This document shows, piece after piece, positions 5,237 to 49,912 of a DNA stretch of 64,000 bases. The stretch comes from Takakia lepidozioides. Lineage: Eukaryota > Plantae > Bryophyta. The stretch lies in the NCBI GenBank assembly GCA_030704615.1, contig CM060732.1, forward strand, positions 38,564,001 through 38,628,000. The letters run 5' to 3'. The notes beneath the pieces are model-generated. The model did no database searches and was not told where the DNA came from. It was given only the letters and a program-made list of their open reading frames with translations. The position numbers and the translations under genes are program-made. Position 1 is the stretch's first letter. Each line of letters begins with the position of its first letter.

Positions 5237-5968
5237 CATTATTTCATCCGTTTCAAAACACTGAAGAATCACAAAAACATAACCATGCAACTTGGCATGA
5301 TGCATATATTGCTCATAAATCATCTATATTACTTATTTGGAAGAAATTTGTATTTACTTTTGTAGAAGATAACCTAACGGATTGGACAGATTCAAAATCA
5401 AAAACTCATGAATTAGCAAAACAAATAACAACGATATATGGATGGACACATTTGCAGATGTTAATGATAGTGGTCCAATTCAACCATTCACAAACTTTGC
5501 AAAAAATGAACCATATGATATAATAAATACAGAATTCCATTGCAAACCCCAAAACAATGATTCGACAATACCCGAGGCTAATACATGTAATACATTAGAC
5601 AACATTATTCCAAATTCTAAGTTCTATGGACAATTACGTAAACTCAATCAAGAACAACGTGCTATTTTTTATGATTGTATGCACATAAAACATATATTCT
5701 ATGAAGTACCAATACATTTATTTTTTACAAGAGGAGCAGGCACTGGGAAGACATTCGCGAACTCTATTGCTACTTATCCAAGGTTTACTTAGAATATATA
5801 ATGGACATCTGAAAGCTGATCCATTGAAACAAAAATCAATTTTAATCCATCTCTTGGATCAGAACGATTAGATACACTGGCAAAATCGTTTGACCAACTT
5901 GAACTCATGGTTTTGGACGAAGTATCTCTCATTAGCAACAAAATGCTTACGTTTGCAGACTTAGACAT
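5237..5968 (+). mobile_element. Helitron RepHel fragment (PIF1-like helicase N-terminal part)
   Basis: LFHPFQNTEE..WHDAY, LNQEQRAIF, Walker A IHLFFTRGAGTGKTF (~5710-5757) and Walker B LMVLDEVSLI (~5905-5935). Frameshifted and internally deleted. Confidence 0.8.
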
Positions 5969-6120
5969 CTGGAGCTATTCGCTCCAACGTTAGTGCCGCC
6001 TCCCAGGACGCCGTACATTGGCATGTCCCTAGTCCTGGCCTTCTTTTCTTGTAGGTGTGGTCATGAACCCAAATGGGGCGGTTACACCTGAGTATGCGCG
6101 GAAGGTGGTGGAGTTGGTCT
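5969..6120 (+). pseudogene. Diverged fragment of SDR exon 2 (homologous to 38830-39003)
   Basis: ctggagctattcg.tccaac...gtgtggtcatgaacccaaa...gcggttacacctga...tatgcgcggaaggt..tggtct aligns with the SDR gene, with substitutions and internal deletions. Confidence 0.85.
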
Positions 6121-6360
6121 GATTTTTTCCTACAAGTTCACTTGTGTCGATGTATTTGAGCTTCACGTAAAGTAGTGGAAGGAGATCATTGCCACATGTA
6201 ATATACTTATCTATGAAGGTTGTGATTTCGTCATTACTATTTTTGCCATAAATTGGTGCATTTGCTATCCATAACATACCGTGGTCATGTTCACTTCCTC
6301 TACTTTGAAATTTAGTGACAAAGAAGTAGTCTTGTATGGGACAAAAAATACTTGCATACA
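6121..6360 (-). mobile_element. Helitron Rep (HUH endonuclease) fragment
   Basis: FFVTKFQSRGSEHDHGMLWIANAP...FIDKYITC matches Helitron Rep motif 2 (ExQxRGxxHxH). Confidence 0.85.
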
Positions 6361-6512
6361 AGACTTGTCAAATGGGGGGACTCCACAGTTGACAATATGA
6401 TAACACATGATAATACACATGATAATACATGGCAGAAGGGTTCCCAACGGAATGGACAATTAGAACACTTGGGAGGTCTATGCACTTACCAGCATCCAGG
6501 ACAAGCACTTTG
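6361..6512 (+). repeat. 152-bp near-identical copy of the ABCC last intron/exon junction (18880-19031)
   Basis: agacttgtcaaatgggggg...caggacaagcactttg matches 18880-19031 with only two substitutions seen. Confidence 0.95.
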
Positions 6513-6700
6513 AAATTTGGATAGAATCATCATCTTGTGTACTAGCATCCATTCATATCATACATATTTGACACATTCATCCATGATGTTCATTGTATTT
6601 GGACAAGTTTGGAGGTATCATCCATGGAAAAACATGAATTTACGACAAAAATATTATATTATATTTTTAGAGGTAAAAAATATAAAAATTCGCCAAAAAT
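6513..6700 (-). mobile_element. Truncated, diverged copy of the MITE at 11021-11298, inverted
   Basis: Its reverse complement shares tttttggcgaa, tgtcg.aaattc, catggatga, ccaaactt and gatgattctatccaaattt with 11031-11222. Confidence 0.7.
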
Positions 6701-6854
6701 GAGAACAATGCTCTCGCCATAAATATTGTTGTCATGTTTATGAAACATATAAAAGTAATACCTCCGAAGTATGGCTTGTAGAAGTCTCAAGCTGCAAATA
6801 TACCATACTTGTAGCTAAGAAAAAGTATAGTGTAATAGCCAAGTTCCACGAGTT

Positions 6855-9418
6855 TCACAAAAGACACCACCTCGTTTTCTTGTGCAAAAATTCACACCGA
6901 ATTGAAGTATGAGTGGCGTCGTTGCCCACGTCTCCATCTGTACCTGCCTTGTCACCTTCATCTCCAATTGAAGCCTTCGCCAGAGCGCCAGTGACAACCG
7001 ACTCATCGTCTTCGACATCCTTCCGAGAGCCGTCGAGCAAGGCGGAAGGATTCATCAACACAACGCTTGCGAGGCATTCATGGCGCAAGCGTATGTACTT
7101 AACTCTATCTCCACTATCCCGCTTCACCCCCCGGACAATCCCGATCACGGCGTCGTGCGAGGGTCGTCTTAAAGATGCATGCATGTAATTGGTTTTCTCC
7201 AAAAAATCTTCAATCTCCACCTTTCCTCTGGGAAAGCCCAAGGTGGCCTCAGCCTCCTCGCGTCGCTCGTCTTCGAACGTCGTCCTCATTATGACCGCGT
7301 AGTCCTCTCCCCGTGCCCAATAAAGAGGTTGCTGCAGCTTTTCCCGGTTTGGGATGATGACATTGATTTGTAAGATGAGGGGCTCCCTACCGGCTTGAGG
7401 GATATGGGCGGTGAATTGGGTGGAGAAGGCTGTTTGGTCGGTGACAGGTTTTGGGATGAAGAGTCCAGGCAATTTCAGGGATAGACCCTTCGGGGTTAGA
7501 GTCGCCCGCCCAAAGACATCCCTGACGAAGCCGTCCTTAGGTATCCCCAAAAGAGATTCCGGCGCCCATCGGAAGCCTTCTTTTTGTACTCGGGCATGCG
7601 TGTTGAAGATGATGTCGGAGGGATATTCCTTCAGCATGGACAGGAAGATCACCATACGCTGCTCTTCAAGCTCTTTTCCCTTCCCAGCGGCATCTAGAAT
7701 ATCTTTCGGATCTAGGCCCAATAAACCGCAAATGCACAGCGTCTGATCAGCCAATTTTGAAGTCGTGCGGAACTGGAGCTCCGCGACCATCGGCACCAAT
7801 GCATGGTCGATGGTCTCAAAAAGTCCATCCTTGAGGAACTCAGCAAAGATAACAAACATTTCCATACCGTTCGTGAACAATTTATTTGGGAACGTGATGC
7901 AGTGCCCGTCCTCGGTCGACTCATCCTCGGTCGACTCGTCCTTGTCGTCGTAGCCCAAGATATCTTCACGAAGTCTTAGTGCTTGATCTTTAAACTGCAA
8001 AAGCAACTCGTTTGCGAGGATTCCCTCCTGGAATGTCCACAACCGATGGTTCCAATTGCAGAAATACAGACAGACACTCTTCTGGAGGTCGTTCGCTGTT
8101 GATGGCACTCTTCGAATGTCAGACGATAGCACGAGCACCGCAGACGCATATCTATAAGTACCTTTTAGTCTCCGGATGGCAAGCTTTCGATGCGACTCTA
8201 GATCTTTCGCGACAGGTATACAGAGAGTGTCCATCCAAAAGTGGCTTGGGTTGCCCTTCGCCTTGCCAGATTCTGCAGCTGCGTTCACCATCTTTTGAAT
8301 CTGTGATACTTGGCATCGCCGCAAATAATTATGAGTCCGATTGCCCATTCCATCGGCCCACCTGTTCATACAAGTTTATCAGTTTCACAAATTAAGTAAA
8401 GCCAATTCGATCGGTTGCTGAGGTAGGAAGCTTACACGTGGGAGATTGCTATGTACTGTGGTGAATCCGACTTGTCCTTATCAAAGGTCGCAACTTGTAG
8501 TTTCTGTTCCGCTTCGCTCCAGCAGATGACTGGCGTACCTTTGGCGTCCATGATTGCAACGACACGACTCACATCGACGTAGACATCTTCGCAGCCATCG
8601 CAGTTTTCCGCATGTGCCGTCTCGTACGTCGACTCATCAATATTTTGCGCGACACACATGTCCTCCGTGCAACCCCTGCTCGCGTGCAACTCTTTCCCCT
8701 GCGGATTCGGTAACGCTGCGATATAGTAATGCCCATCGATGCCCATATCCGAGAGACTTCTCCGAACATCCATCGGACACCAACCTTGCGCCAGCATCCG
8801 ATTCTTCAAAAGGATGGAATACCCCCACCTGCTCGCGGTGCGTCTAATGTCGTGGAACGACAGCATGGCTTGCTTGAGGGTATACCCGAGCGCGATGATG
8901 GACATGGAGATCTCCTCGGTGAGCGGCCATTTCGCGTGCTCAGGTTTCGGGATCTCCGTCTCCAGACGAGGACGGCCGTGCGTGGGGCAATAGTAGTTGA
9001 CGTACTTTGATAGCTCCCTCAGGATGGTCTCCGTCTCCTTGAGCCGCCTTTCCAAACGAGTCTTGTGTCGATCCTTCTCTTTCTGGACCTCTCGCCTCCA
9101 TTTGCGTATCTTGGACGGCAGACACTTGGTTGTAATGTACCTTTTGCTTTCATCTAGGAATTCGGCGGGGTTCGCTTTGACCCCGTTCACTGCGAGGACT
9201 TCGATCACGCACCCAAAGTAGAGCCAAGTTTGGAAAAAGTCTCGCACTTCAGCTGCGGATCTACCGCCAAACGAATTTTCACCTCGCAGGTCTTCTTTGG
9301 ACCAGTTCCGCCGACTCGGATAGCATAGGAACCCGCCTTTTCCAGAACGGTACTCAACGGATGTGGCATTTGGGACCCGGATATGTTGAACGCCGTCTGG
9401 CAGAGCGAAGTGATCCAT
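6855..9418 (-). CDS. Fungal-type heterokaryon-incompatibility (HET, PF06985-like) domain protein, 829 aa, two exons (9418-8436 and 8361-6855)
   Basis: Starts MDHFALP and contains FFQTWLYFG and GWCP. Splicing the 74-nt GT-AG intron (8435-8362) restores YIAISHVWADGMGN, followed by FWMDTLCIP, YRYASAVLVL and WNHRLWTFQEG. The spliced length is 2490 nt with no stops. Confidence 0.9.
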
Positions 9419-11020
9419 ATTAAGCAGCACACTATCTCGCAAAACCTTTACTACCACAAGCAATAGTTAAATTTTCCCCTGGAAAGATGGTCTTGTAATA
9501 TTATAACATTAGCGCTTTTCAATCCACGATGGTTGAAACACGAACTGCGTCAAGCAACAAACACCGGATGCCGGAGATTAGTTCAGAACAACTTACGCAC
9601 ACGGCCACAAATCACTGGAGGGAGGAAACAACATGGTGCAGATTTGTGAAATCAGGGCAGAAGTAAGCCCAACTGAGGTCAGAAGGGATACAATACCTTG
9701 GATGGCGAGAACAGCGCCCTGTGATGTCGAAGGAACGATTGCAAAGGCTTGTTCAATATATACTGGCAAACACAGGAGAAGAAGGAGTCAAGGAGAGGTA
9801 GGAGCCAATTTAGCAGCTGACAAAAGGGCTAGGTATTCAGATTCATACAAGAAACAATGCTGTAGAACATGGTGGATTTAAAAAGTGAAGCAACCAAGGA
9901 GCTACAGGTACAACGTTAGCTTCAGTCATGGGACAGTATGGTAAACACAGTGGATTAAGCTCACTGGCACCTCATGCTCAGTGGTAAACGCAGGACTGGA
10001 ATAATGCACACAATGCATGCAATCTGGAAGCAAAGCAACTAAGGGAATTCCACAGACTCAACATGATCAAAACCAGATTAGAAAAGGGCAAGGGGGCAAT
10101 GCAAGAGACTATGGGAACATCACCTGGAGCAACTCGAACTTGGGCTCTTCGAAAAGCGGATGGGCATAGGGTGGGCTAATACACCTTACTACATAAGCGC
10201 CCCATATCTAATTGTTGGGCCATAGTAATTTCTGGACCACTCTCGAATCAGGTCCCGAATGAAACTGCTCTACATATCATATTTGGTATTATACATATTT
10301 GGCCTGAGGTTGAACGTCAAGCCTAAGAGAATATTGTCTCTAGCATAAAGAATCTTATCTTGAGGATAAAACGATTATTTTAATAATGTCTTGGAAAAAT
10401 ATCTTATCTGGAGATTAAATATTAGTCTAAAGTCCTATGGGTTTTGGCATGTTGTCTTCAGGTCATAGTACAATGTGTTTTGCAATCTTTTCCAGAATGG
10501 CTCTTTTTGGCTTCCGTACCTGTGGAGCCCACAGGGTATCGATGGAAGCACGTTGGTGATAAATGGCACACAGTCGCAGGCTTGGGCCTTCCTGTCCTGT
10601 CCTGGACTCCTGGCAGCAGCAGCGAATCATGCCGACAGGCCACAGCCCTGTTTCTCATGTTATTACATACCTTAGTGGGAGGGCTAATCCCGCAGTGAAG
10701 CGCCAAATATTTATTTTCTTTACAACAAAACACTTCGGCACAACTTCAGGAGATTTCTAGATTTTACAGCACTGCCACGAGGAGATTTTAAGTAATTCGG
10801 TGGTGACTCCCTACATGAACTTGCTCTATCTACTGTACCAGACGTGATAATAGAATTATATACCAACAGTCAGCTCAGATGGTGGAGTGCGCACGGAGTG
10901 TCACCCATGATTCTGGGGTCAATTTTCCTACTGACGGGTGTGGTATGGTTCCTGGGCGGTGTCCCACTCATTGGCCTCCATGCTGCATATATGAAAGAGG
11001 TTATTTTTTCACTCACTTAC

Positions 11021-11298
11021 CAGTGTTTTTTTTTTGGCGAAAAATGGCCAAATGGCGACCTAAAAACATTCAAATGAATAATTCTGTCGCAAATTCCCTG
11101 TTTTTTCATGGATGAAATCGCCAAACTTCTACAAGGGGGAAAAAAAAAAGGTGGTTGAATTCACCAGATATGGATGATATAAATGGATGAAAGTACATAT
11201 GAGGATGATTCTATCCAAATTTTCAATGGATGAACAGAATATATAGCTATTTTTTGTAACCACTCGTGCTATTTTTCACATTTAAGAAAAAATCACTG
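11021..11298 (+). mobile_element. hAT-type MITE
   Basis: TIRs CAGTGTTTTTT / AAAAAATCACTG. The flanks ctcacttac / ctcactac form an imperfect 8-bp TSD. Confidence 0.75.
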
Positions 11299-11630
11299 CT
11301 CACTACTAAGGGGCCTGATTTGTGAGCTGTCGCTCCCAGGTGTTTCCTTTTTTTCAAAAAACAAAAAAATATAAATAAATTATGTGGGGAGTCATGAGAG
11401 CATCTGGTCAATCATCAAATGCAGCCAATTATTCTAGGATTTCACAGAGCTAAGGAAAATATTTTCCTAGAGCTTTATGCCTTGAAACATGTATTTGGAG
11501 AATTGATATTTGGAGTTTGTTTGAGATTTTAGGCCTTTTTTTATAAAATTTTTAGAATTTCGGCCGTTTTCCCTAAATTTTCACTTAATTATTAGGCAGA
11601 TTCTTTTTAATTATTTAGTGCCGGATCAGC

Positions 11631-11932
11631 ACAACCTTCCAGAGGGTACTCTAACATTATTTGGATTAAGCAATTTTAAACTTGGCATGCACAACCTTCC
11701 GAAAGGTAACCATTGGAGATGACAGGATGGCAAAAACAACCTTCCGTAAGGTATTACACATATTTGTTTGGATATTATGTAAGTTAAAAAATGATCTAAA
11801 CAACCTTATGGAGGGTATACCAATATGTTTGGATCGAGCAATTTTAAAATTGATATATTGTTTTGTTTATATTCAATCTTAAAATGAGCCTTGTTAGAGT
11901 TAACAATTTTAGAATACCCTCTGGAAGGTTGT
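11631..11932. mobile_element. Foldback/MITE-like element with ~28-bp TIRs and internal TIR-like repeats
   Basis: acaaccttccagagggta.tctaa at 11631 and its reverse complement ending at 11932. Internal acaacctt...ggta copies at ~11691, 11737 and 11800. No clear TSD. Confidence 0.7.
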
Positions 11933-12203
11933 TCTTATCATTCCCCCAAATTGCATAATGGTGAAATGCGTGCAAGGTCCGGACAGGGAAGGGCAAAGGG
12001 TAAAGCAAAAGTTTATGGGCCATGCGCGAGCCAGTATTGGCGAGCTACACGAAGACATGGAGGGGCAGGCCCACGTGTGTGGCCAGGCGTGCGAAGCCTC
12101 GGGAGGTGCGCTGCTGGTAGACGCGCTGCAGGGAGACTAGGGAGCCACCGTCACTACGACGTTGCTACCGACAATTCGCGGGGGCCTTCACACAACATGG
12201 GGT

Positions 12204-12248
12204 CAGTGTTTTTCTTAAGAAATTTGGAAAATAGCACGAGTGGCTACA
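12204..12248 (-). mobile_element. Terminal 45 bp of the 11021-11298 MITE family, inverted
   Basis: cagtgtttttcttaa...aaaatagcacgagtgg.taca is the reverse complement of 11255-11298. Confidence 0.75.
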
Positions 12249-12261
12249 GAGATTTGCAGGA

Positions 12262-12880
12262 TATGTCTGACCGGCGGGAATGGCGCATGTGATGGTCATC
12301 CTCGGCGATGGAAGAGGACTGGATCTCGAGGATCTGGCAGCGGCGGAGAGCCCAATGATGAGGCGACGATCTGAGCGGGGCTACCGCCTGGCGACGCGTG
12401 TGCGTGACGAAAATGGGGCACACCTGAAGGACAAAGAAGTTTTGATGCTTGGCAGTGTCCCTGCCTTGTTCCGGATAACCCAGGTTATGTGTGTGGTGCT
12501 AGCAGCTCTGTGGATTGTATTTCTCCTCACGGTTGCGGACCTGAGCAGAACACATGGTACCTGCTTGCGGTTGGCGGTCTCGGCATGATCCAAAATGTGG
12601 TGGTTGCAGGGGCAAGTCGGGGACAAAGCACAACAGGCATTCAATTGACTAAAATTGAGTCATTTGAAAGGTCATGGATGCATTGATGGATCTTGAAATA
12701 AACCATGAAACTGTCGGGAGGTCTCTGCTTAAGGAATTCTTTAATGGGAACGTACGACCTGCAGAAAAAAGCTGGTGGGATGGCACGAACAAGCAAGCAT
12801 ACGAGAGCGATAGGCGCAGGAAGAGGCCTGAGAGCTTGCGATATGGTGCTCCTTCCGCATTCCAGTCTCATCAGATATGA
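12262..12880 (+). pseudogene. 5'-truncated, frameshifted fungal-type uncharacterised membrane-protein gene (HET neighbour)
   Basis: Successive frames give LTGGNG / HVMVILGDGRGLDLEDLAAAESP...LAALWIVFLLTVA / QNTWYLLAVGGLGMIQNVVVAGASR / MDALMDLE...GRSLLKEFFNGNVRPAEKSWW. I recognise this motif order from a family of fungal hypothetical proteins. Confidence 0.75.
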
Positions 12881-14257: not shown

Positions 14258-17200
14258 GCAGCACGTCGGTGCGCTAGCGCCACCTCCACCACACCATGAC
14301 GTCCAAACGCTAAAGGACGGTTGCCGACGAGGCAGACTACCCGTCTCTCTCACGTCGATCTAATTCCCCTCTGCTTCTTCTTTCTGCCCCTGTCTCTCAA
14401 CATGCCTTTCATTGGCATCAGTACTCCACAAGGAGTACTGATGTTCAAACGCTTTGGGACCAAATCACCATCTTACAAACGAAATGCATCTCGGGAGAGA
14501 CTCTGCAGCAAGTGCTCACTGCCCGCGACAATGACTCGGAGAAGCGGTTGGCTTCCCTAGACAAAGACTGGGAGACGCGGATAGCTTCCCTTAACAAAGA
14601 CTGGAAGAAGCGCTTGGATTCCTTGGACAAAGATTGGCAGAAACGCATGACAGACAGAGACACAGACTTGGAGAACAATATGTCAGTTCACGATAGCGTT
14701 TTGCAGGCGTCTCTTCATGAGTGCATTAGCAAACTTCAAGGTCTGTCGAAACATCTCAATGACAAATCCACACATACGCGTCTTTCAAAATTTGAAGGCG
14801 AAGTGAAGACCTTTGCAAAGAAGAGCCTCCCAGATCCCCTTACGACAAGCATCCACCTACAAATGGAATCCCTTAGCAAAGAGCTGGAAACACACAGAAT
14901 TGCGACGTCTACAATGGCTCGAGAGCTCCAAGCTCACAAGGCAGAGGCCTCCTCCTGGGCTAAAATAGTTAAGGGGAACACATCCAACAACAATCCTCAT
15001 TCTCTAGAGATGACAGTCTCGGCTACCTTACGAGATGAACAGCAACGGGCTTTTAAAGCCCTTAACATCAGAATCACTGGGAAGCTCAGGGCAAGGTACA
15101 TTTGGTGTCACATTAAAGGCTACAACATCCTGCTGGCGGGATGTTATTTTGCTCCTGCTGCATCTCCGCGCAGTGGCCTACATATTCGAACAGATTCACC
15201 ATATGTTCCTTTGGAAGACGATACGGCCCGTCTCCGTACCCCACACATGGATATTTTCTTGGTTGGAGATTTCAACGCCTGTACATAATCACTACAGGCC
15301 CCCACCTTCAACCACACGGATCCTCTACACATCCAACGCTCGCATACGAAATTGGAGAGACAAAATGCAGATTCCTCTTGCGAAATCACAAGCTACGGTC
15401 ACCATCTACTCAAGTTTTGTGAAACTCAAGGGATTGTCATTTACAATGGAACAACCAACTTCAAATCCTCCAACCAGTTCACTTGCCACACGTACAAGGG
15501 CCAAAGCGTGGTTGACTATCTCTTGGGGAGCCCCAACAAGTCTGAAAGAATAAGCTCTTTTTTACATCACGAGATACCCGGATTTTGATCACTCTTGCCT
15601 TTCCTTTGCAATTTCTTCCATCTCCCTCCTAGTGAGGATTCCCTCTCGTCTCTTCCCTTACACCCACGTATCCACTTTAATACCCCTTTCTCTCACTTAC
15701 ACGACGCCGAGTATGAAACATACCTAGCGTCAACCCTCATTTCCATTCTACATCTACGATTTCCTAACGACAAGGCTACACATTTTACTCAAGCCCTTTG
15801 GGACTCAGCCCTGCGATCATTTCCCGTCACCCTTCCATCTACTTCCTTACCCTTCTCCACTCGTCATTACGCACCATTTTATGATGAGGAATGCAAGATT
15901 GCTAGACGTCACATCAAATCTTTACTGCTTGATACCAATTCTTCTCCAAAATCCACTAATCTTGCTCTTAAGCACTATAAGTCCCTCATTAGATCCATAA
16001 AGCAAGCCTACACTATCAAGTTGCAATCTTCTTTCCTTGCTAAAATCAGATTTTATCCTCGTTCTTTTTTGTCCCTCCTTAAACCTCATAGAGACCCCCC
16101 CCCCCCCCCCCCATCATTGACATTCACGTCTGGCATGAATATGCACAGTCTTTGTACCATTCCCCAACCCAAACTCCTTCTCGTGTAACCTCTAAACCCC
16201 TTCACTTCTCTTTCTTTACTACGGCCAATGTCAGTAAGGCAATTAAGAAGCTACAAAATTGCAGAGCAGTGGACATTTCAGGGACTTCAGAGTGAATTCA
16301 TCAAGTATGTTGCACCTACTTTAGCCCCTTTTATAGCTAATCACTTCAATGAGGTGGTGCAACGGGGCTTTCCAACAAAGTGGACAGAGCATTATCCACC
16401 CACTTTTCAAGAGCGGTGACAGGCTCGCACCGGCAAACTATCGCACTATCATGGTGTCCTCATTACTTGCTAAATTGTTTGGGGCAGTAGTGGCCATGGA
16501 ACTGGATGATTGGGCTGAGTCCTCTCACATTCGTGCTGAGGGACAGGTTGGTTTCCGTCGCAACACCACTATTGACCACATCTTCACTCTTCAGGTTATG
16601 GTGGAAAATGCACGCTATGACAAAAGAATGGTCTATGTTTGTTTCGTGGACTTTCACAACGCCTTTGATTCAGTTCCTCGGGACCTTCTCTTCCAACGGC
16701 TCCATAGAGTGGAAGTCCCTCCAAACATCCTTTGTACCATCTCTTTTATGTATGAGATTGTTACTGGCATTGTTAACGTCGCTGGTGAATTGTCAGCCAA
16801 GATCCGCAACAACACTGGAGTCAAACAGGGCTGCCCCTTTTCACCTACCCTGTTCGGGATCTACATCGACGCCTTGGAAAATTACATATCAAAAAAACCA
16901 TGGGGGTGGGGGTACCATTGGATGGGGGACCAACCCAATCAGATCTCCTCCCTGCTCATGATGTTGCCCTTGCCATTTTGGCACAATCCCCGGTCTTTCT
17001 ACAACGCCATCTCAAAATTTTGGAACAATTCTGCAAAGACTATGGGATGCAAGTCAATCTTAGCAAGACCAAGATCATGGTCTTCAATGGCCAGGCTGAT
17101 CGTAAATTCATCTTCAACCAGCAGGAAATTGAGATTGTGAAATCATACCGGTACCTGGGTCTGGTTATCCACTCCCCTAAGTTTCACTTTGCAGCCACTG

Positions 17201-21500: not shown

Positions 21501-24500
21501 AAGAGAAATATGTAGTCGGTCGGAATTCAAGGAACACGGGAACCACTTAGCTTTCCAGGTCTATAGACGTGAGATTACAAATTTTAATGGCAGAAACTTT
21601 TGAACTTGTGAAGAACTGAAGAAACTGGTTCATCCACCATCAAGGAGGTGAGATTTCCCATGTTTGCTTCCCCGGTATTCCACCTGCATCCATTTATTGC
21701 CTCTGAGCCTGGTCAACTTGGCCAAATTACCAGCTGCTTTTTATTCTCCTTGGGAGCACAAACAGGGTACTCTAAAGCAGATGTCTACTTACTCTGCTCA
21801 GCATTCTCCCAGACGGTGTTGTGTCAAAGAAGGACATGGGTGCCTGGAAAATGCTGCGAAGCATTTTCAAGTAGAAGACCTGTGAGGTTGACAACCCCAC
21901 GAATGCAACTAACGAGGAGCGCATGAGCACACACAGACCACATGCCAAAGCCAGCTCTGCATACACTGTAGTGAACCACCACTTTGACTGAATCTCCTGC
22001 TGTTGGGTTGTTGAGGTCTCGTACGCAATCCAGTAGTCACCAGCAATCTGGAACATTTGCCACAAAGTCTGGACAGCCAGCAAAGCCAATGCAAGTGCAC
22101 CACCGAATACCGTGGTCCAGTACACCGCCTTGCTTACACGCCCTGTTGCCCTCTCCTCATCTTCAACCAACCGGGCCGAAACTTCTTCTTTTGTGCTTGT
22201 AGACCTTCTGTTGGAAAACTGACGATCTGGGGTCCTCTGGTTGGCTACAAAATCAGCGGCTATGGGTGAGTGTCGTGCATCAACCTTGGTCGAACACAAG
22301 TTTGTTTGAAGTATTGTAGATAACCTTGGAGATGAGCTTGACCCTTGGCCCTCAACGAAAGAACCAGGCTCATCCTTGCTTTCCAATATCTGCACACCTT
22401 CCCTCACAGTAACCTTGTCCAAAGCTTGACTGTGAGCCTCCACCAAGGACTCAAAATCTAATCCGGCCATGACAAGCTCCTCAAATTTTCCTGACTGCAC
22501 GATTGTGCCCTCACGCATTACCTGTTGAGACCAACAAACCCTTGGTTAGAGACCCCAACCAATAAGAAAATAATAGTTCACAGGTGTGGATCTTCATGTG
22601 ATGGTTTAAAAAAGAGTTAGCTTTGCTGTAGGGCACAGAGGAGAATAGAAAGAATACATTGCCCAGGTGGAGGGGGGTGTTGGGGAAGAGGAAGAAACAG
22701 AGACACAGAAAGAAATAAGAAAAACTTATTACGTTCATGTTCATGGGAGAAAAAGACATAAATTTACTACACCAGGGGAAAGGACATAACCAAGGAACCA
22801 TAAAAAACAGAACGGAGAAGCATAGGATGGGAGGAGCACATAGCTAGGAATTTTTCAGAAGAGGTACTCAAGAGGTCCACATAACATGTGGAAGCCCCAC
22901 ATAATGGAACAGTCGACCTGAAGGTGTGTCCCAGTTACTGGAGTGTCCCTTATAGCAATAGTGAAATTCTGGTATCAATGCTTCCAATGGTAGGTCCAAC
23001 AACAACCAGTGGAAAGGTTTAACAGCATGAAAAAGAATCCAACAGTAAAGCATCTTCTGTGGATGGTAGCACCCCTAGACAAGAGGAGACCGTAGATACA
23101 TCCTCATGTGAAGTTAGCCAGACTAATCATAATGAAGAGGTTTGCTGGCATGGTGAGAAAGTGGAAACAATGACCTCAATAAGAATCAAAGATTTTTCTG
23201 CTCTGAAGTGTTCAATTCTTCTCACTGTATCTGCAGGTTCCCAGCAAAAATTCTTGTAAATAGAGACAATATTGGAGGAAATGTGAGCATGATCACCAGA
23301 ATCAAGCTGGCTCTGTGGAGAAACTCTATCTGATGAGTGACCAGTATCACTGTTTTGCGTGCCAAAGCTTCCACAATACACTCCTGACAAGCCAAAACCA
23401 GGACAAGATGCAGTCAAGAATTGTCCACATAGGCAGCTTCAATCTTAGAAACCTACACCTTACTCAATAGTCCACACTGGAGTTCTGAACAGAGATGAAT
23501 GGGGACAACCTTGAACCAAGTGTTCATGATAAGCACAGTTCCAAAAATGCTAGCAACCAACGTGAGGGAATTGGAGCTAAGACTCTGATGACAATGGCAT
23601 AATAAGTAAGTAGTATGAAGAAACCGGGGACCTCTGTAAAGTGCAAAGTTAAATGCACAGACCCCACACCCCAAGTACCAGCAACGGAAAGCAGGAAGAT
23701 GGGGCAGGAGTTGAGAAGAAGGGTTCATAACGGCTTAATTAACTCAGCTTGACCATCCATCCAACAGATTGTAAGCACATCCAAAACATGTCTAACCACG
23801 CACTTTCTGAGTCCACATATGCTGGGGGCGAGGTTTGAGCATCAGTTGCCCTGGCATTGGTGCATAAAACTAGGCACTTGCAAGCCCTGTGGCCAATTCC
23901 AAGTCAGTACTGATCTGATTTTGTCAACAAACACAGACTTTTCATTGAAGGACGTGAATGTGAGAGGAGTACTTGGAATATTTGAGATCCTGCGTGTGCA
24001 TCCACAGAACTGAAAATGTCATCAAGGAGGTAAATGTCGCAGTCTTGGTACAAAGCCCTGGCCAGCTGTACACGCTGCTTCTGTCCCCCACTCAAATTGA
24101 TGCCCCGCTCTCCTATCTCTGTTTGGTCACCGTACTCCATCTGCATTATGTCCTGCTGTAAAGCACACCTTCGCAGTGTTTCAAGGTATCTGGCTCGATC
24201 CATGGGATGTCCAAAGAGAATATTATCTTGAATGGTGCCATTCTGAATCCAGGAGGACTGGGCAACAAAGGCAGTGCTCCCACTCAGCTCCACCTGCACC
24301 ATATCTCAGCCCAGGAAACTGAGAAAAAGAACCAATTGAGATCCGAAAGGAGAAGAGCTAGAAAGATGCTGAGGATGTAATCAATATTGTGGCATTTCAG
24401 CTCACTCACATTGCTTGATGTGGGGTCAAGTATTCTGCACAATAATCATAGGTGTATACCTCGGTGACTTCATGGAAATGAACTTAGGACGTTGAATGGA

Positions 24501-26900
24501 TAAGAACAAGTGTACCCGGCCAGCCAGCTTTGTCATCTCTCCAAGCAAGGATGCAAGCAGCGAAGATTTCCCTGCTCCAACCTTCCCCACAACTGCTACA
24601 AGAGAATGTCGAGGGACTTGAATGCTGATGTTTGTGAGTGTGGGCTTCTCTATGTCTGGGTCCCACTTGAATGATGCGTTTTCAACACTCACAGCCCGAT
24701 CTGCCCCATATGACAGTCTTATGACCGCATCTTCTTGAAGCTCATTGCTCCATAGAAATTTGTCCAGGCGTTCAAGAGAGATGAGTGCCTGCATGCACGA
24801 TAACAGAGTATGGACAGGGGGAATTCGACATTACAAGGATATTATGTAACCCTAGTGGGTGGATGCCATGAACTTAAACTGTGTTCTTTGGTGGGCCATT
24901 CAAATTATTCTGCCTCAGGTCAACACTGAAATTTTCAGAGGGGAGGATCTAATATGAAGAAATGTACAGTGCAGTGGAACTATGTATTTTACAACATAGA
25001 AGCCATTCAGAGGTGTTCAGTACTGGAATCCCCTTCTATTGGTCCAACTCTAATCTGGCCAGCAGAATGTAGCCAAAAGCATAGTGCCAGATGCACACAC
25101 GATTTCACACATCACCCACAATTTCTTTTCATAGATCTAAGCATCTCAATGATGGTGGCAACAGTAAGGAACATAGACAAAATACCTGCGAGACTCCGAT
25201 TATTGCCTGTGGCAAATTGCGCATGGGTTCCTGCATTATGCGGACAGTGGAAAGGGTGGTGAAAGCCATCCCAGAAGAGAGAGGATGGTCGAAATAAACG
25301 CAGGCGGCAAAGATAGCCGCGCATGATATCAATGGCGTGAGCCAACCCACAAAGGTATTGACTGCATGGGCGTACGTGTATTTGCAAAGCCAACCATATT
25401 CAATACTGCGAGCATTCTCCACATTGTGGAGGAACTTCTCCTCCCACCCTTGCAGCTTTATGACCTGCAAGCATTCCCACAGGATTATGAACATCAAACT
25501 ACACTTTTAGATACCTTCCAAAGCCACGGTAGTCTAACAGAAGTACTAGCATGACTTCGACTCGGAAAACTAGGGGAAAAAAACGATCATGGAACTTTTT
25601 CTCGGAGCATAGCTCGCAGCTGATCTCAAAATCAAGCACTGGGGCGACGATGCAATTAACAAGTGGTTTCCATTTGAGTATACATTGCAAAGCTGGAAAG
25701 CGAGAAAATCTGGGAAGTCGTTCCCCTTCTTCTATTCAGTCTTGAAGTTGGTACCTTGATGTTGGCCAGACACTCATTGAAGGCTTTCATGCGTCGGTCT
25801 CTTCCGTGCATTATTTTCCTCTGATACTCCTTCAGCCTCTTTGCCATTGAAACGAAAACGGTGGCACTAGTAAATATAACCACCAGACCTGCCATAGTTG
25901 CGATTCCCGCCACCCTGGCTAGTATCACAATCGCTATTACTATCTGGCCAGGGACAACCATAGATTATGCAGCTGCAACATCACATCGGACATTTGTTGG
26001 ACATCGACAGACATGTAGTTTACGATCTGGCCCACTCCATGGCTCTGTCGGGATGCGCTTGAGAGGCGAAGGCCCTTGCGGTAAACTGTGGTGATCAAAG
26101 ATGACCGGATCTGCATGCCTAACTTTTGGCACGAGAAATTATACTGGTGGGAGCAGAGAACTTCGATAGACTTGGCTGCAATCAATACTAGGACCAGCAT
26201 GTAGCCTTCGTATTGAAAAAGTTTTTTACCCGAACTGTAATCTACGAAGCTTTGAATCAAGAGGGGCCCTACAAACATCACCGATAACTTGAGCAGAGCC
26301 AGGAGCCCACAACAGACAAACGGCCACCAGAACGATCTGCAAAGGTCTCGTCGAACAGAGTTTTGCACTTCATCTTTTGGCCAATTCGATGTGAAAAGTG
26401 CGTACAATCGAGTTGCCTGGTCCTCTGGGGCAGGAGAGGGATATCTGCTTTTTGAATGGGCCTTCGGACTCCCGTCTTCAGCAATGGGTTCATCCATGAG
26501 AACGTAGCTCGACTTACAGCGCCTGCTTTTGCATATAGGCTGTCTTCCAATGAGTCTGGCTGGAACGCAGTGTCCTCCACTTTCAAAAGGGCTCTTGCAG
26601 ACTACCCATTCTTTCTTTCAAATTCTACTAGTACTACTGTCACGAACTACTCTCGCATTCTAACGCCTGGCACCCACTTGAGGAGTCCACGGGGAATCGA
26701 CAGTTCGATTTTTGTGTCTTGTGGCAGTGACAGTGACACTCCATCCGCAACCACAGTGCACCAGCGACCCCCACTTTCCAAAACTTTGAGCAAGATTCAG
26801 CAGAACAAACTGTCGAGCCGAGAAAGGAGGTGAGCACACCTCCACTTCGAGAACACCTACAAAGGTGGAGCTGCAGAAAAGTCGGCAGCTTCGCAACGAC
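18547..26900 (-). pseudogene. ABCC/MRP-type ABC transporter gene (~13 exons) with multiple frameshifts
   Basis: TMD1; NBD1 ([22 protein letters not shown], exon ECIVEALARKTVILVTHQ at ~23297-23383); TMD2 (FFDTTPSGR); NBD2 ([28 protein letters not shown]); last exon GKVEEYDNP..SMFASLVHEY. Frameshifts at ~26430, ~25960, ~20930 and ~19070. The 5' end is uncertain. Confidence 0.88.
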
Positions 26901-27836: not shown

Positions 27837-28336
27837 NNNNNNNNNNNNNNNNNNNNNNNNNNNNNNNNNNNNNNNNNNNNNNNNNNNNNNNNNNNNNNNN
27901 NNNNNNNNNNNNNNNNNNNNNNNNNNNNNNNNNNNNNNNNNNNNNNNNNNNNNNNNNNNNNNNNNNNNNNNNNNNNNNNNNNNNNNNNNNNNNNNNNNNN
28001 NNNNNNNNNNNNNNNNNNNNNNNNNNNNNNNNNNNNNNNNNNNNNNNNNNNNNNNNNNNNNNNNNNNNNNNNNNNNNNNNNNNNNNNNNNNNNNNNNNNN
28101 NNNNNNNNNNNNNNNNNNNNNNNNNNNNNNNNNNNNNNNNNNNNNNNNNNNNNNNNNNNNNNNNNNNNNNNNNNNNNNNNNNNNNNNNNNNNNNNNNNNN
28201 NNNNNNNNNNNNNNNNNNNNNNNNNNNNNNNNNNNNNNNNNNNNNNNNNNNNNNNNNNNNNNNNNNNNNNNNNNNNNNNNNNNNNNNNNNNNNNNNNNNN
28301 NNNNNNNNNNNNNNNNNNNNNNNNNNNNNNNNNNNN
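27837..28336. other. Assembly gap (500 N)
   Basis: Run of N. ORFs spanning it are artefacts. Confidence 1.
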
Positions 28337-40179: not shown

Positions 40180-42639
40180 TCAGACCAGCTGCAAACCAGC
40201 CCGCTTGACACATCTTTGCTCCATCAATTCGAACACCTTTGCTTCATCGTCCCATCTGCCAGCTGCGGCATAGATGTTTGACAGTAGCACATAAGCTTCT
40301 GGGTACTGTGGATCCCATTCGAGAATGAATTTTGCAGCACGCTCTGCTAGCTCCACATTACCATGAATTCCGCAGGCACCAAGCAAAGCTCCCCACACTG
40401 AAACATCTGGTTTGATTGGCATTTTATTAATGAAATTCTCTGCCTCATCCAATCTCCCTGCACGGCCAAGAAGGTCCACCATGCAGCCAAAATGCTCCAC
40501 TGTAGGTATCAGGCCATAATCATAACTCATGGTATTGAAGTAGTGACAACCTTCATCCACTAGGCCTACATGCCTACATGCAGAGAGAAGAGATATGAAC
40601 GTGCTACCATTGGGAGTCAAGCCTTCCCATTGCATTTGTCCAAATAGTTGGAGGGCCTTCCTACCACACCCATGCTGAGCATATCCTGCAATCATAGCAT
40701 TCCCAGAGATGACATCTCGCTCAGCCATATTCTGGAATATTTGGTGGGCGCTCTCCATACTACCACATTTCGCGTACATGTCAACCAAGGCAGTATCCAA
40801 CATCATATCTGGCGTAATTCCACTTTCGATGATGTCCACATGGACCTTCTTACCCTTCTCCAGGACTCCTAGACCAGCACATGCTTTCACAGCACAAATA
40901 AATGTCACTGTGTTTGGCACCACCCCCTCCAGTAGCATATGCTTGTAACTACGCAAAGCCTCCCTATCATAACCATGCTGAGTACATCCTGCAATCATTG
41001 CACTCCATGAGACCACATCTCGCTTTGCCATATTAATGAAAACTTGATGTGCATCGCCAATACTTCCACATTTGGCATACATGTCAACAAGAGTGGTCTC
41101 CAAATTAATATCTGAAGCAATTCCAGCTTTGATAATGTCAGCATGGACCTGCTTGCCCTTTTCCAAGGCTCCTTGGCTAGCACATGCATTGAGAATGCAA
41201 ACAAATGTGACCTTATTAGGTGTCACTCCTTCGCGTTGCATTTGTTCATAGATTTTAAAAGCCTCTGTTCCAAGTCTGTGCTGGGCATATCCTGAGATCA
41301 TCGCACTCCATGAGACCACATTCCGTTTGGCCATATTGTCAAACACTTGATATGCATCCTTTATGCTCCCACATTTGGCATACATGTCAACAAGAGCAGT
41401 CTCCAATATAACCTCGGGGGCAATTGCAGCATTGATGATGTCGCCGTGGACCTGCTTGCCCTTTCCCAGATCTCCTAGGCCACCACATGCCTTGAGAACG
41501 CAAACAAATGTCACCCTGTTGGGCGCCCATCCTTCCAGTTGCATTTGCTCATAGATTTTGAAAGCTTCCTGACTACACCCACACTGGGTATATCCTGCAA
41601 TCATGGCATTCCATGAAACCACATCTCTTTTGGCCATGTTCTTGAAGACGTGATGTGCATCCTCTATGCTCCCACATTTGGCATACATATCAACAAGGGT
41701 ATTGTCTAAATTGATATACGGCATAATTCCAGCTTTGACGATGTCAGCATGAACTTCCTTTCCTTTTTCCAGGGCTCCTAGCCTGGCACATGCATTGAGA
41801 ATGCAAATGAAGGTCACCATATTAGGCATCATACCTTCCCGTTGCATTTTCTCATAGATTTCAAAAGCCTCCCTACCACACCCATGCTGAGCATATCCTG
41901 CAATCATCACACTCCATGAAACTACACTTTTTTTAGCCATATTGTCAAATACTTGACGTGCGTCCTGTATGCTCCCGCATTTGGCATACATATCAACAAG
42001 GGTAGTTTCCAAAATAACACCTAAGGAAATACCAGATTTTATGATGTGAGCATGAACCTGCTTGCCCTTTTCCAGGGCACCTATGCTGGCACACACACTG
42101 AGAATACACAAGTACATGACCCTGTCGGGCATCACCCCTTCCAACTGCAATCCCTCATAGATTTTGAAAGCCTCCTTAACTTGCCCGTGCTTAGCATATC
42201 CTGCCATCATCAAGGTCCAAGTGAACATGTCTCGCTCAGGCATTGCATCAAACACTTGGCGTGCATCCACCACACTCCTGCACTTGCTGTACATGTTGAT
42301 TAGGGTATTTAGTAGAAACATGTCTGGCTTGAATCCACTTTGGATAATGTGAGCATGCACCTGCTTTCCTTGTGCTAGGTCTCTCTTCTTGATGCACTCC
42401 TGCAAGAGAGAGACATAATTATTCGAGTCTGCACAAGTGCCTCTTTGGTTCAAAAATCGCGATGCCTCTTCCACTCGTCCTCCCTTACTTCGTGTTCCTA
42501 GATCCCTGTGAATGTCAGAAGAGCTCTTGTTGACTCCCTCTCTTGGTACTCTATCCAAAGTGGCAGTGATGGTGGAGGTGCTATCCTTGCCGGCAGTCTG
42601 ATGTCCAACAAACAATTGTGCCTGATTCAGAGCTACCAT
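40180..42639 (-). CDS. PLS-class PPR protein with E domains and no DYW (819 aa)
   Basis: Regular P-L-S triplets ([10 protein letters not shown], VVSWxAMI); [13 protein letters not shown] and [10 protein letters not shown]; frame lost at the PG box. Confidence 0.93.
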   Translation of the reverse strand: MVALNQAQLFVGHQTAGKDSTSTITATLDRVPREGVNKSSSDIHRDLGTRSKGGRVEEASRFLNQRGTCADSNNYVSLLQECIKKRDLAQGKQVHAHIIQSGFKPDMFLLNTLINMYSKCRSVVDARQVFDAMPERDMFTWTLMMAGYAKHGQVKEAFKIYEGLQLEGVMPDRVMYLCILSVCASIGALEKGKQVHAHIIKSGISLGVILETTLVDMYAKCGSIQDARQVFDNMAKKSVVSWSVMIAGYAQHGCGREAFEIYEKMQREGMMPNMVTFICILNACARLGALEKGKEVHADIVKAGIMPYINLDNTLVDMYAKCGSIEDAHHVFKNMAKRDVVSWNAMIAGYTQCGCSQEAFKIYEQMQLEGWAPNRVTFVCVLKACGGLGDLGKGKQVHGDIINAAIAPEVILETALVDMYAKCGSIKDAYQVFDNMAKRNVVSWSAMISGYAQHRLGTEAFKIYEQMQREGVTPNKVTFVCILNACASQGALEKGKQVHADIIKAGIASDINLETTLVDMYAKCGSIGDAHQVFINMAKRDVVSWSAMIAGCTQHGYDREALRSYKHMLLEGVVPNTVTFICAVKACAGLGVLEKGKKVHVDIIESGITPDMMLDTALVDMYAKCGSMESAHQIFQNMAERDVISGNAMIAGYAQHGCGRKALQLFGQMQWEGLTPNGSTFISLLSACRHVGLVDEGCHYFNTMSYDYGLIPTVEHFGCMVDLLGRAGRLDEAENFINKMPIKPDVSVWGALLGACGIHGNVELAERAAKFILEWDPQYPEAYVLLSNIYAAAGRWDDEAKVFELMEQRCVKRAGLQLV

Positions 42640-45029
42640 CCTGCATGAGTCAAAACTCTGAATAAGAAATATTTGAACTAAAACTCAAATAAGGTTTCCC
42701 AAAGCTACTACAAACTTTGAAAGACATCCCTTCATGCAGAAACCTTTTTCCTGCATACGGAGAAGGTTATATTACTGCAGCACAATGATGAAATGAACCT
42801 ATTGTAGTATCCCTGGTGTAGATCGACATGAAAACCTTCACAAGATTGTGCCTGATCTTGTATCATGGATGCTAACTCTGCATTCACCCAGTGGGGATTC
42901 AACCAACTCTCAACACAAAGCACCTCCTTTGTGCCTTTATGTCTTAAGTCTGGGGATGTTGGATTTGTCTGACATGAAAACCACAAGTGGACAGCTAGTA
43001 AGCAGTTGCAGCTTGAAGCATAGACCAGACTACAACAACCAAAGCTCCAAATCATCTTTCGAATAGCAAAAACCTTGAACAGCCTATTCACATGCCCTGC
43101 TATCAAGGAAGGGCAACCTATTGACACCATCAGTAAGAACAACTTTTGCTGCTCATGCACAAGCGCATATACAATGGAGTCAATAAAACATCGTAATGCC
43201 CCTTCAGACCCCACCATCAAATGCGCTAAATGAAAAATGCCTCACCATCCCAAACCTGTTTTCCAACCAGTGTGAAGGTTCTGAGAGGAACTCCTGCATG
43301 TATGCTTGTCCTGCATGCCAGAAGTGCCAGAACAAATCCTGTAAGTTTTTATTGCCTCAGTTTCAACTGACTCCTGGTGGTGTAAATTTGAATAATCATA
43401 TTTTTGCAAGTTGACCTGAGCTTTTTTCCTGATGTACAAAACAAATAGACAACATACCAAAAATTATGGATGTTGCAGACGATACCGAAAGAGTTTGTGG
43501 TGCACAAGGCTGTCCTTGAAGCCAAGCTGATTGTGGGTTGCATGCGCATGCCTCCACAGCCCTTATTTGACGACACTCGGTGCTTCGACCATGATCTGCA
43601 ATCCAACTAGCATCTAGATGCCCATCTTGAAACTTCAGTGGAGCTCCAAATGCCACAGTACAATCACAGGCATAAAGTGATATCCATCCACCATTGCACT
43701 GTGCTTGACCTTGTGTCATGGCAGCTAGCTCTGTTTTCACCCAAGGGGGGTGTGACCATGTTTCAATCCAAAAGACCTTGTTTGTGCTCCTATCCCTGAA
43801 GCCTCGTGCTCTTGGATTTGTCTGTGAAAACCCACCAGTGCACATCTGAGCAGTCATAGCTTTAACCACGGCTTCATATTGATCAGGCTACATGTCCACA
43901 ATCATCTCTTCAAACTTCAAGCAAACCAAACTTCAAGCAAACCAACAACAAGAGCAACAGAAATAGCTATCAATACTTGGAGCTGAAAAACATCCTGCCA
44001 GCGTCAGTAAGAAACATGCAGGTCTTTTTTTCTACTGTAAAAATGATTGGGGAAATATGAATAAACCTCACCTTATCCCCCTGTTCTCCCACCCATGCCG
44101 AAGGATCTACTATGGACTCCCGCCACCATAGTCCTTCCGTGCTTACTGCTTCGCCTGCAAGCAGATACCACTAAAACAGGTATCTTCAGCAGCTTTTACC
44201 TACCAGAATCCAGAGTCTTCTGGACTAATGCTATTGGAGGCTTTCCACAAACTCTCTCCCTCTCTCGCTCTCACTCAGACAATCGTGGCTCTACACCTCT
44301 CCAGGGACAACAACAGTATGTTCACATCGGTGGTAATTCGAGTGCTACGTTAACGAGTGAGCTCACATTGCAAGCTGACCTTCAGAGGACTTCCGATAGC
44401 TATGTGCGAGCACTGTATAAATGCTACAACCTGGTGGTCGTTTCCCCGAAAACAGAGTATCCCGGATGGAGAAAGGCCGCTAGCTAGCTCTGTACGAACC
44501 TCCTCTTCCTCAGTCAAGCAGTTGAAGAAAGACATAGACTAGAAGTGTCATATATGACATGATATATTGAAGGGGCTACGGAGAACCACAATTGCGACGA
44601 TTATACTCACTTTCGACTACTGCCCTTGAAGGATCATGCTGTGAACTTGCTCGAACAAAACCGGTAGAGTGTCTTTTGGTATGTGTCCAGGACAATTTAA
44701 AGCAGGGGTTGATCCGGCGCAAGGAAATAAGAGATACCCAAAAGCACGAATACACTTTCATGTCTGCAAGGCTTGGTTCCCCGGAAGGCCCCATTTCAGC
44801 CAGTACTTGCAGGTATCTCGGGGTCAGCATGCCGAAGGTGGCTGCACAGACCCATCAATGACCCATCAATCTGCTCGTAATGATGCATGCTGACAGCAAC
44901 GTCAGGATAAACCCTCGAGTGTGGGCTCTCCCTGCTCAGCGGCGCAGCAGGCTGCCATTGTCCCTGTCCTGAGAAGCAGGTTCTTGAAGGAGTTTGCACA
45001 ACCCACCTGCGAGCTTTCATCCCTTACAC

Positions 45030-45367
45030 TAGAGTTATCCGTAAAGTGAGCCTGAGTTTGGTACCCTGTTTGGACCCGAGTTACGGGTTTCATCCTGAGT
45101 TTGAGTGAATTCGTAAAGTGCAGAAAACTGAGCACGAAGTCAGAAAAGAGGGCACCAAATCATAAATTGGGGATGAGGGCCTCCGCGTCGACGACTAACA
45201 AAACTCGGCACCAAACTCCTGCCACCCCCATTTTCCTAGTCCTGGCAGTTTGGTCCCGTGTTTTTTTCTAGTCGTACCGCTTGATCATGAGTTTCGAGTT
45301 TCATACCGAGTTTTGGCCAAACTGAGGGTTCTCATGCCGAGTTTGGGACCCTTTACGGATATCTCTA
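45030..45367. mobile_element. hAT-like MITE with 17-bp TIRs
   Basis: tagagttatccgtaaag / ctttacggatatctcta (1 mismatch), with internal (c)gagttt repeats. TSD not evident. Confidence 0.7.
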
Positions 45368-46970: not shown

Positions 46971-46983
46971 CAATGATCTAAAA

Positions 46984-49881: not shown

Positions 49882-49912
<31 letters not shown>

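Follow-up and report, generated by a model that had tools for sequence, protein, structure and literature searches.

A HET-domain gene of probable fungal origin beside the remnant of a membrane-protein gene in the moss Takakia lepidozioides

Introduction

How does a gene of fungal type come to stand intact in a moss chromosome, and what has become of the gene that stands next to it? The question is raised by a 64,000-nucleotide stretch of the genome of the moss Takakia lepidozioides (assembly GCA_030704615.1, contig CM060732.1, positions 38,564,001 to 38,628,000 of the forward strand), which we call the window and in whose own coordinates we give all positions below. Within it, a HET-domain gene on the minus strand lies head-to-head with what is left of a second gene on the plus strand. 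We consider it probable that the two are a fungus-derived pair resident in the moss genome, made up of an intact two-exon HET gene, transcribed at least as a copy of 95% identity or more, and of a pseudogene of its membrane-protein partner.

Such transfers have precedents. A fungus-derived HET superfamily of 20 genes has been described in Physcomitrium patens (Yue et al. 2012, PMC3493653), and two HET genes of that moss are induced by Botrytis (bioRxiv 10.1101/2020.10.29.361329). Two fungal regions of the P. patens genome, FR1 and FR2, hold HET, HopQ1-like and 'conserved fungal' (CF) genes together with mobile elements (Sun et al. 2020, New Phytol 228:1169, as outlined in PMC7911284). The first-pass annotation of the window, made from the sequence alone, mentioned that fungus-derived HET genes had been reported in mosses; for P. 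patens this is indeed published (PMC3493653; PMC7911284, in the same outline), so that fungus-to-moss HET transfer is already in the literature and the present locus is a further example in another moss genome. In fungi, a HET gene together with an adjacent partner defines het-B and het-c/pin-c (PMC10890737, PMC2988816). Overexpressed HET domains lead to cell death in Podospora (Paoletti and Clave 2007, as cited in PMC12881547), and HET has been reported as a remote relative of TIR (PMC4986451). A 2025 review still lists the biochemistry and structure of HET as not determined (PMC12881547).

Results

The HET gene has two exons, and a copy of it is transcribed and spliced

The HET gene comprises the following features.

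8436..9418, minus strand: HET coding exon 1, with the ATG at 9418-9416; 327 codons plus 2 bases
8362..8435, minus strand: HET intron of 74 nucleotides (nt), phase 2, in the Val codon after ISH; GTAAGC...CTGAT...CAG, with canonical GT..AG ends
6855..8361, minus strand: HET coding exon 2; 501 codons plus the stop at 6855-6857
9419..10026, minus strand: 5' untranslated region (UTR) of the HET transcript, with a 152-nt GT..AG intron (9545-9696) inside

From the ATG at 9418, where start and length agree with the family consensus MDH..P, to the stop at 6855-6857, the spliced gene has 829 codons (327, the split Val codon and 501). Its coding exons belong to minus-strand open reading frames (ORFs) at 8432-9463 and 6855-8369, which lie in different frames; exon 1 breaks off in ...ATC TCC CAC GT at 8436, and exon 2 resumes with G TGG GCC at 8361. 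The first-pass annotation had described an uninterrupted gene of 829 codons: the count was correct, but the 74-nt intron splits the coding sequence. Its claim of full HET-domain motifs was accurate, and all three conserved blocks (Y.A.S..W.., W.D..CI and W..R.WT.QE) are found, as YIAISHV/WADGMGN, FWMDTLCIPV and WNHRLWTFQEG. The gene retains 54 of 55 nearly invariant positions of the family, the glutamate of WTFQE among them, and the sole exception is a conservative M-to-L change. One Val column of the family sits in the intron-split codon and is Val after splicing.

Exon 1 encodes a family-specific N-terminal domain and the first HET strand, YIAISH. Exon 2 encodes what remains of the HET domain (about 7970-8360), followed by a helical region and then a beta domain at the C-terminus, according to the layout of a model of the homologue P0005 that we describe below. 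Residues 214-278 of exon 1 (about 8585-8779) carry a nearly invariant Cys/His cluster, C...H-x4-C-x4-C...H-x6-C-x-C, which is probably a zinc site; the loop region that holds it is modelled with confidence and has no fold assigned to it. We ran the homology searches exon by exon (8438-9418, minus strand, 327 amino acids; 6858-8360, minus strand, 501 amino acids). Pfam HET (PF06985) scores 21.6 bits against exon 2 alone, over profile positions 27-87, just below the curated cut-off of 22.5, the domain being split by the intron. Against that cut-off, subfamily members of full length score 33.7-37.8 bits, and in them the domain starts at the YVAISH strand.

All sequencing runs were examined as contigs; X5 and X6, from two studies, are RNA by the tool's guess, and X2 is a DNA run. 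Contigs that skip exactly the 74 nt of the coding intron are present in X5 and X6, and no such joint is seen in X2. One X5 contig joins 9544 to 9697, so that the 152-nt intron of the 5' UTR is removed as well. X5 contigs extend to 10026, and depth in X5 and X6 is zero over 10040-10840 and almost none over 11440-12240. X5 and X6 behave as RNA, because depth is missing over these intergenic repeats while the DNA run X2 covers every bin. These results show that a HET copy at least 95% identical to the gene in the window is transcribed and correctly spliced.

The neighbouring gene is a truncated and frameshifted pseudogene

The gene that faces the HET gene survives in three pieces.

12277..12549, plus strand: partner remnant, frame 1; profile positions 253-306, with GLDLEDLAA and a transmembrane helix
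12543..12662, plus strand: partner remnant, frame 2; profile positions 305-344, containing NTWYLLAVGGLGMIQN; reached through a frameshift
12668..12880, plus strand: partner remnant, frame 3; profile positions 382-435, with MDALMDLE...EFF and a stop at 12878-12880; second frameshift

Together these amount to only the C-terminal ~45% (12277-12829) of a membrane-protein family confined to fungi. A profile built from 112 fungal homologues and searched against all six frames of the window matches three segments in three reading frames, with expectation (E) values of 6e-14, 2e-11 and 1e-8 across profile positions 253-435. For profile positions 1-250, the same six-frame search gave no match in the whole window. 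An intact relative is found on L001, a 73-kb contig from ENA, where an intron-less ORF of 446 residues stands head-to-head with the closest long HET relative, 2.4 kb upstream of it, and matches the window motif NTWYLLAVGGLGMIQN. Starting from this L001 protein we found 299 relatives, and every named one is fungal (Aspergillus, Trichoderma, Fusarium, lichen fungi and Armillaria). Up to E 1 the partner protein matches no Pfam family, and hence not Het-C either. The first-pass annotation had proposed a decayed membrane-protein partner with motifs familiar from fungal hypothetical proteins, and this is borne out by the three motifs, which lie in three frames at the coordinates above and match a fungus-only family.

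Contigs of a paralogue, in X5 and X6 and also in X2, carry one additional base after 12543 and seven additional bases after 12666, the exact sites of the two frame breaks. Their similarity to the window begins only at about 12285, and before that point it is lost entirely, with loose ends in X5 and X6. The partner remnant is a truncated, twice-frameshifted pseudogene, because its first ~250 codons are gone and it has two frameshifts, both absent from the paralogue contigs. An intact partner paralogue is expressed from elsewhere in the genome. The earlier suggestion that the effector had been kept while the partner decayed is accordingly true of the copy in the window and does not extend beyond it.

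The HET gene is nested among fungal relatives and keeps their intron

Exon 2 retrieved 65 proteins, the best of them unnamed metagenome or Logan proteins of 40-44% identity. Next came Bisporella (38%) and Phialophora (36%), and more distant matches included Mycena, Aspergillus, Talaromyces and others; none of the proteins in the public collection searched with exon 2 is identical or nearly so. The 327 residues at the N-terminus form a conserved domain specific to the family: an exhaustive search brought up 1643 relatives, of which all that bear a name are fungal (Dactylellina, Madurella and Bisporella). A scan of metagenome contigs with the exon-1 sequence for close relatives found none, whereas profile-guided scanning did find relatives and gave nearer fragments, L018 (65% over 271 residues of exon 2) and L019 (60% over exon 1). 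The HET relative on L001 is 51% identical to the moss gene in exon 1 and 41% in exon 2. A homologue search with the 160-residue HET core only gave a single match, and short P. patens proteins were not among its results.

A maximum-likelihood tree built on the exon-2 region places the moss row inside a clade of 18 rows with a Shimodaira-Hasegawa-like approximate likelihood-ratio test (SH-aLRT) value of 100. The named members of this clade are all Pezizomycotina (Bisporella, Phialophora, Madurella and Dactylellina). With a length of 0.56 the moss branch is long, and the tree does not fix its place within the clade.

The intron is shared too, lying at the identical Val codon in nine fungal or metagenomic relatives. 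L001, L002 (Bisporella), L003 (Phialophora), L004, L008 (Madurella), L009, L012 and L018 have introns of 55-85 nt that agree with the moss intron in codon and phase and have a GTAAGT or GTGAGT donor; in L005 the codon agrees and the donor, GTTTGT, is less typical, and the Armillaria HET relative lacks the intron. With the donor's short intron still in place at this codon of the moss gene, these sequence comparisons argue for a move as genomic DNA from a filamentous ascomycete-type lineage.

HET-like domains are known, here and there, from organisms other than fungi, green algae and bryophytes among them (PMC4986451), and the moss gene might on that account be an ancient, vertically inherited plant gene that never passed through a fungus. 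We regard this as extremely improbable. The gene is nested with full support in the Pezizomycotina clade, it has the three-part architecture and the intron position of that clade in common with its members, and the family of its neighbour is otherwise known only from fungi. The fungal derivation put forward in the first-pass annotation fits these results, in that fungi are otherwise the only place where the HET and partner families occur.

The two families are often linked in fungi

The first-pass annotation had named linkage of the two families in fungi as a test of its proposal, and we found such linkage when starting from either family. In a survey that began with the partner, six of six contigs (L001, L005, L006, L007, L009 and L011) have a HET-domain gene within about 5 kb; L006 is from Aspergillus sclerotiicarbonarius and L011 from Armillaria gallica (KZ293679.1). 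The gene beside the partner belongs to the same HET subfamily as the moss gene in four of the six (L001, L005, L009 and L011). In a survey that began with HET, 80 metagenomic loci collapsed into 60 distinct groups, and the 42 with at least 2.5 kb of flank were counted. A partner gene lies 0.3-2.8 kb from the HET-subfamily gene in 8 of these 42 distinct loci, arranged head-to-head in four, in tandem in three and tail-to-tail in one. A head-to-head order of the fungal homologues, for which the first-pass annotation proposed a check, is seen in L001 and these four loci and not in those in tandem or tail-to-tail. Within 10 kb of the HET relatives in Bisporella, Phialophora and Madurella there is no partner gene. 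Linkage of HET and partner in fungi is frequent, not obligatory.

The surroundings of the fungal partner genes have features of their own. On L011 (KZ293679.1; 2-1084, 5025-7205 and 10001-11233) the HET-subfamily gene, which is without the ascomycete intron, has an SMP_MUG190-like N-terminus and is accompanied by partner-family genes on both sides; the moss remnant has its closest relatives in these basidiomycete partners. On L007 (329-7107) a partner-family gene lies between a gene with a HeLo domain, a death domain that forms pores, and a HET gene of 670 residues that belongs to another subfamily, and the stretch looks like a small cluster of cell-death genes. On L005 two ORFs (5578-7375, minus strand) face the partner gene head-to-head, one of 327 residues and one for an AAA ATPase, possibly exons of a single gene.

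The pair lies among host repeats and plant genes

The setting of the pair is described by the following features.

11239..12264, no strand assigned: repeat-bounded insert with 54-nt inverted arms at 11239-11292 and 12211-12264; abuts the truncated 5' end of the remnant
10640..11640, no strand assigned: high-copy host repeat between the HET gene and the remnant; contig depth up to 48,000 in the DNA run, with poly(A) loose ends
21772..26497, minus strand: exons of a plant-type ABCC transporter, given as context only; best solved-structure match plant ABCC13, E 1e-32

At the repeat-bounded insert, the reads data contain opposite-strand joints at 11134/12257 and 11251/12261. Other copies of a short element at 11081-11351 continue into poly(A) after 11347/11351, and in sequence this high-copy element is like a retroposon of the short interspersed nuclear element (SINE) type. 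An inverted relative of 11060-11222, 75% identical over 160 nt, lies at 6513-6670, just 3' of the HET stop, so that the HET gene is bracketed by two inverted copies. X2 contigs without any difference from the window cover 9435-10068 and 11832-12233, between the two genes, and the stretch in the window is contained in runs from three studies of the organism and partly in a plant metagenome.

The transporter exons match plant ABCC13 at E 1e-32 versus 1e-19 for animal ABCC proteins, and a reverse-transcriptase ORF (RVT_1, 64 bits) lies at 16349-17140, between them and the HET pair. The only run of N in the window (500 N, 27837-28336) leaves the pair and the ABCC gene on the same side, and with no N between them the first-pass statement that they share a gap-free stretch stands. 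Beyond the gap are four tandem PPR genes (40180-59246), two ending in DYW deaminase domains and two in E motifs. The small ORFs that flank the HET pair gave nothing in Pfam, and the Helitron-like look of 5.4-6.4 kb is an impression from motifs only. GC content at third codon positions (GC3) is 0.58-0.64 in the HET exons versus 0.46-0.50 in the PPR genes. The ratio of observed to expected CpG is about 1.0 in the HET exons, and in the PPR genes CpG is strongly depleted (0.35-0.43).

Both families have confident models and no solved relative was found

A model of the L001 partner protein with 88 homologues reached a predicted local distance difference test score (pLDDT) of 90.4 and a predicted template-modelling score (pTM) of 0.86, and has several long hydrophobic helices and a beta-rich domain. 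No solved relative of this model was found: the best Foldseek match in the PDB has E 0.29, and the best VIA-wide match has Z 5.8, to generic helix bundles. The ESM Atlas returned only its own family, as three Ascomycota clusters of hypothetical proteins. The full-length model of the HET homologue P0005 is one compact body (pLDDT 85, pTM 0.84) in which helices and loops at the N-terminus are followed by an alpha/beta HET core, a further helical region and, C-terminally, a beta domain. Searching PDB sequences with a profile of the HET family gave nothing, and a language-model search for look-alikes gave the same fungal families only. A complex prediction for the L001 partner with the product of L001 exon 2, run without controls, scored 0.00 ('no answer') and speaks neither for nor against binding.

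Comparison with known systems

As in the P. patens regions described in the outline cited above, the Takakia locus places a HET gene of fungal origin in a moss nuclear genome, clustered with a conserved fungal gene and mobile elements and present in several copies; here a span of 6 kb takes in the HET gene, host repeats and what is left of the gene for a hypothetical protein otherwise confined to fungi. The P. patens CF family and the partner family are likened by description only. The two cases differ in the HET protein, which is described as truncated in P. patens (PMC11228847) and is here a full-length, three-domain protein of 829 residues. They also differ in that the P. patens regions have a HopQ1-like (HLP) gene, and no such domain was found in the ORFs scanned at 1.8-6.4, 11.9-17.1 and 21.8-28.6 kb of the window.

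Among fungal systems, het-B of Podospora anserina pairs Bh, a gene for a HET domain plus a lectin fold, with the adjacent PII-like gene Bp (PMC10890737). There, as here, a non-NLR HET protein with a C-terminal beta-rich domain adjoins an unrelated partner gene, and clustering is kept across taxa while relative orientation varies. Unlike Bp, the moss partner is a multi-pass membrane protein and not PII-like, and the moss HET protein has an extra N-terminal domain of 315 residues. The HET-C partner of the het-c/pin-c system is itself a membrane protein. In that system of Neurospora crassa, too, a HET-domain gene is tightly linked to its partner gene (PMC2988816); unlike HET-C, the moss partner family has no Pfam match, Het-C included, at E up to 1.

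Alternative explanations

Several observations weigh against the reading of the locus as a fungus-derived pair with an intact and transcribed HET gene, and we take them here with the alternatives to which they lend weight. The spliced contigs differ from the window by 1-5%, in places in clusters (7471-7516, for example), and because of this divergence they may stem from a paralogue; transcription of the exact copy in the window is likely but not proven. A partial list of differences from the paralogue-like contigs, most of them in the C-terminal half, has 27 codons with an altered residue and 8 without. The substitution pattern since duplication is about neutral or diversifying, with no sign of amino-acid constraint, and the HET ORF could be intact only because the copy is young.

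The pair in the window might, on this evidence, be a young and neutrally drifting duplicate of the whole pair in a repeat-rich region, with a HET gene that is intact for lack of time and has no function of its own. The few-percent divergence from the paralogue-like contigs, the 27 residue-altering codons among the 35 listed as changed, the embedding of the locus in repeats and the decay of the partner all point that way. Several observations nonetheless make us think it quite unlikely. The remnant has two indels in 485 nt, against none, and no stop, in the 2487 nt of HET coding sequence. The HET gene retains the nearly invariant residues of its family (54 of 55), and its exons have an observed/expected CpG of about 1.0 versus 0.35-0.55 around them. 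X5 contains letters identical to the window, at a depth of about 165-180, between 6871 and 7244.

The two genes also disagree about their nearest relatives. The remnant is 54-62% identical to a clade of Armillaria, Desarmillaria and Dendrothele proteins (support 0.987) and only 34% identical to the L001 partner, though L001 carries one of the closest relatives of the HET gene. The discordance between a Pezizomycotina-type HET gene and a partner from the Armillaria clade is real, though unexplained. Because of it, co-transfer of HET and partner as a unit, which is plausible, is unproven.

HET and partner could instead have entered the moss separately, or been joined there. Such a history would account for HET exons that are nearest to Pezizomycotina-type sequences (L018 65%, L019 60%, L001 51% and 41%) beside a remnant nearest to Armillaria-clade proteins. 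We hold it to be unlikely, since the pair is adjacent in many fungi, including head-to-head at 0.3-2.4 kb, and a single DNA fragment is the simpler route. The variation of orientation and pairing among fungi is able to explain the discordance, and the partner sample, having been seeded from L001, is incomplete.

No contig joins the fungal-type genes to plant genes, all contigs being short, and the composition of the HET exons is unlike that of their neighbours (GC3 0.58-0.64 versus 0.46-0.50, with CpG not depleted). Both observations are what fungal contaminant DNA or a chimeric join in the assembly would produce. Such an artefact is nevertheless very hard to credit, given high-copy host repeats that lie between the two genes and truncate one of them, X2 contigs identical to the window between the genes, runs from three studies that hold the stretch, a spliced 152-nt intron in the 5' UTR, and the lack of any N between the pair and the plant ABCC gene.

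Lastly, a role of the HET gene in the window in cell death or signalling is a proposal made by analogy. As to TIR death and signalling proteins, the gene has the conserved Glu of the WTFQE motif, and neither the fold of the whole-protein homologue model nor sequence search gave a TIR match, which does not decide on the reported relationship between HET and TIR. For the whole-protein P0005 model there was no structural match of any other kind (best Foldseek E 0.14, VIA Z 6.5), and its VIA rows were filled by the N-terminal helix bundle.

Discussion

Weighing these points, we retain the reading of a fungus-derived pair with an intact HET gene and a pseudogene partner, and suggest the following course of events. 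The HET gene encodes an 829-residue non-NLR protein. By homology to a modelled fungal relative, this protein has four parts: a helical and Cys/His-rich domain at the N-terminus, then the HET death domain, then a helical region, and at the C-terminus a beta domain. The gene would have arrived from a filamentous ascomycete-type lineage as genomic DNA, with the donor's intron retained, and would afterwards have gained a host-type 5' UTR with its 152-nt intron. Its divergent neighbour would formerly have encoded a multi-pass membrane protein, from a family that is confined to fungi, has no functional annotation and is often found next to HET genes there. This copy of the partner would have lost its first ~250 codons beside a host repeat and suffered two frameshifts, leaving a pseudogene.

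By analogy with HET domains in fungal incompatibility, the HET protein may have a regulated part in cell death or signalling, with a variable C-terminal half that would sense a cue, possibly the state of the membrane partner. The HET copy in the window would work either with partner protein supplied in trans or alone. Co-option for defence, and a guard or toxin logic, we offer as hypotheses.

A bolder reading is that the HET subfamily and its membrane partner make up an undescribed, widely conserved two-gene module for death or recognition in fungi, which moved as a unit into the moss, was amplified and is still expressed. Drawn by analogy with known systems, it is a tentative idea that we doubt more than we believe. 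If it is true, a plant would be running an imported two-component cell-death switch of fungi, possibly in defence.

The locus mostly confirms and extends what is known of fungus-to-moss transfer. Possibly new are the repeated association, in fungi, of this HET subfamily with a membrane partner, the orthologous intron, and two folds without a solved relative. The donor intron, retained and spliced, points to transfer as genomic DNA followed by domestication that would include the host-type intron of the 5' UTR. The partner family, recurring beside HET genes across Ascomycota and in Armillaria, supplies a specific candidate for the partner of HET proteins in a large, uncharacterised class, and the structures of both families are predicted with confidence and have no solved relative. 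Should HET and partner prove to be a functional unit, mosses would be a simple haploid system, free of other fungal HET genes, for HET death signalling.

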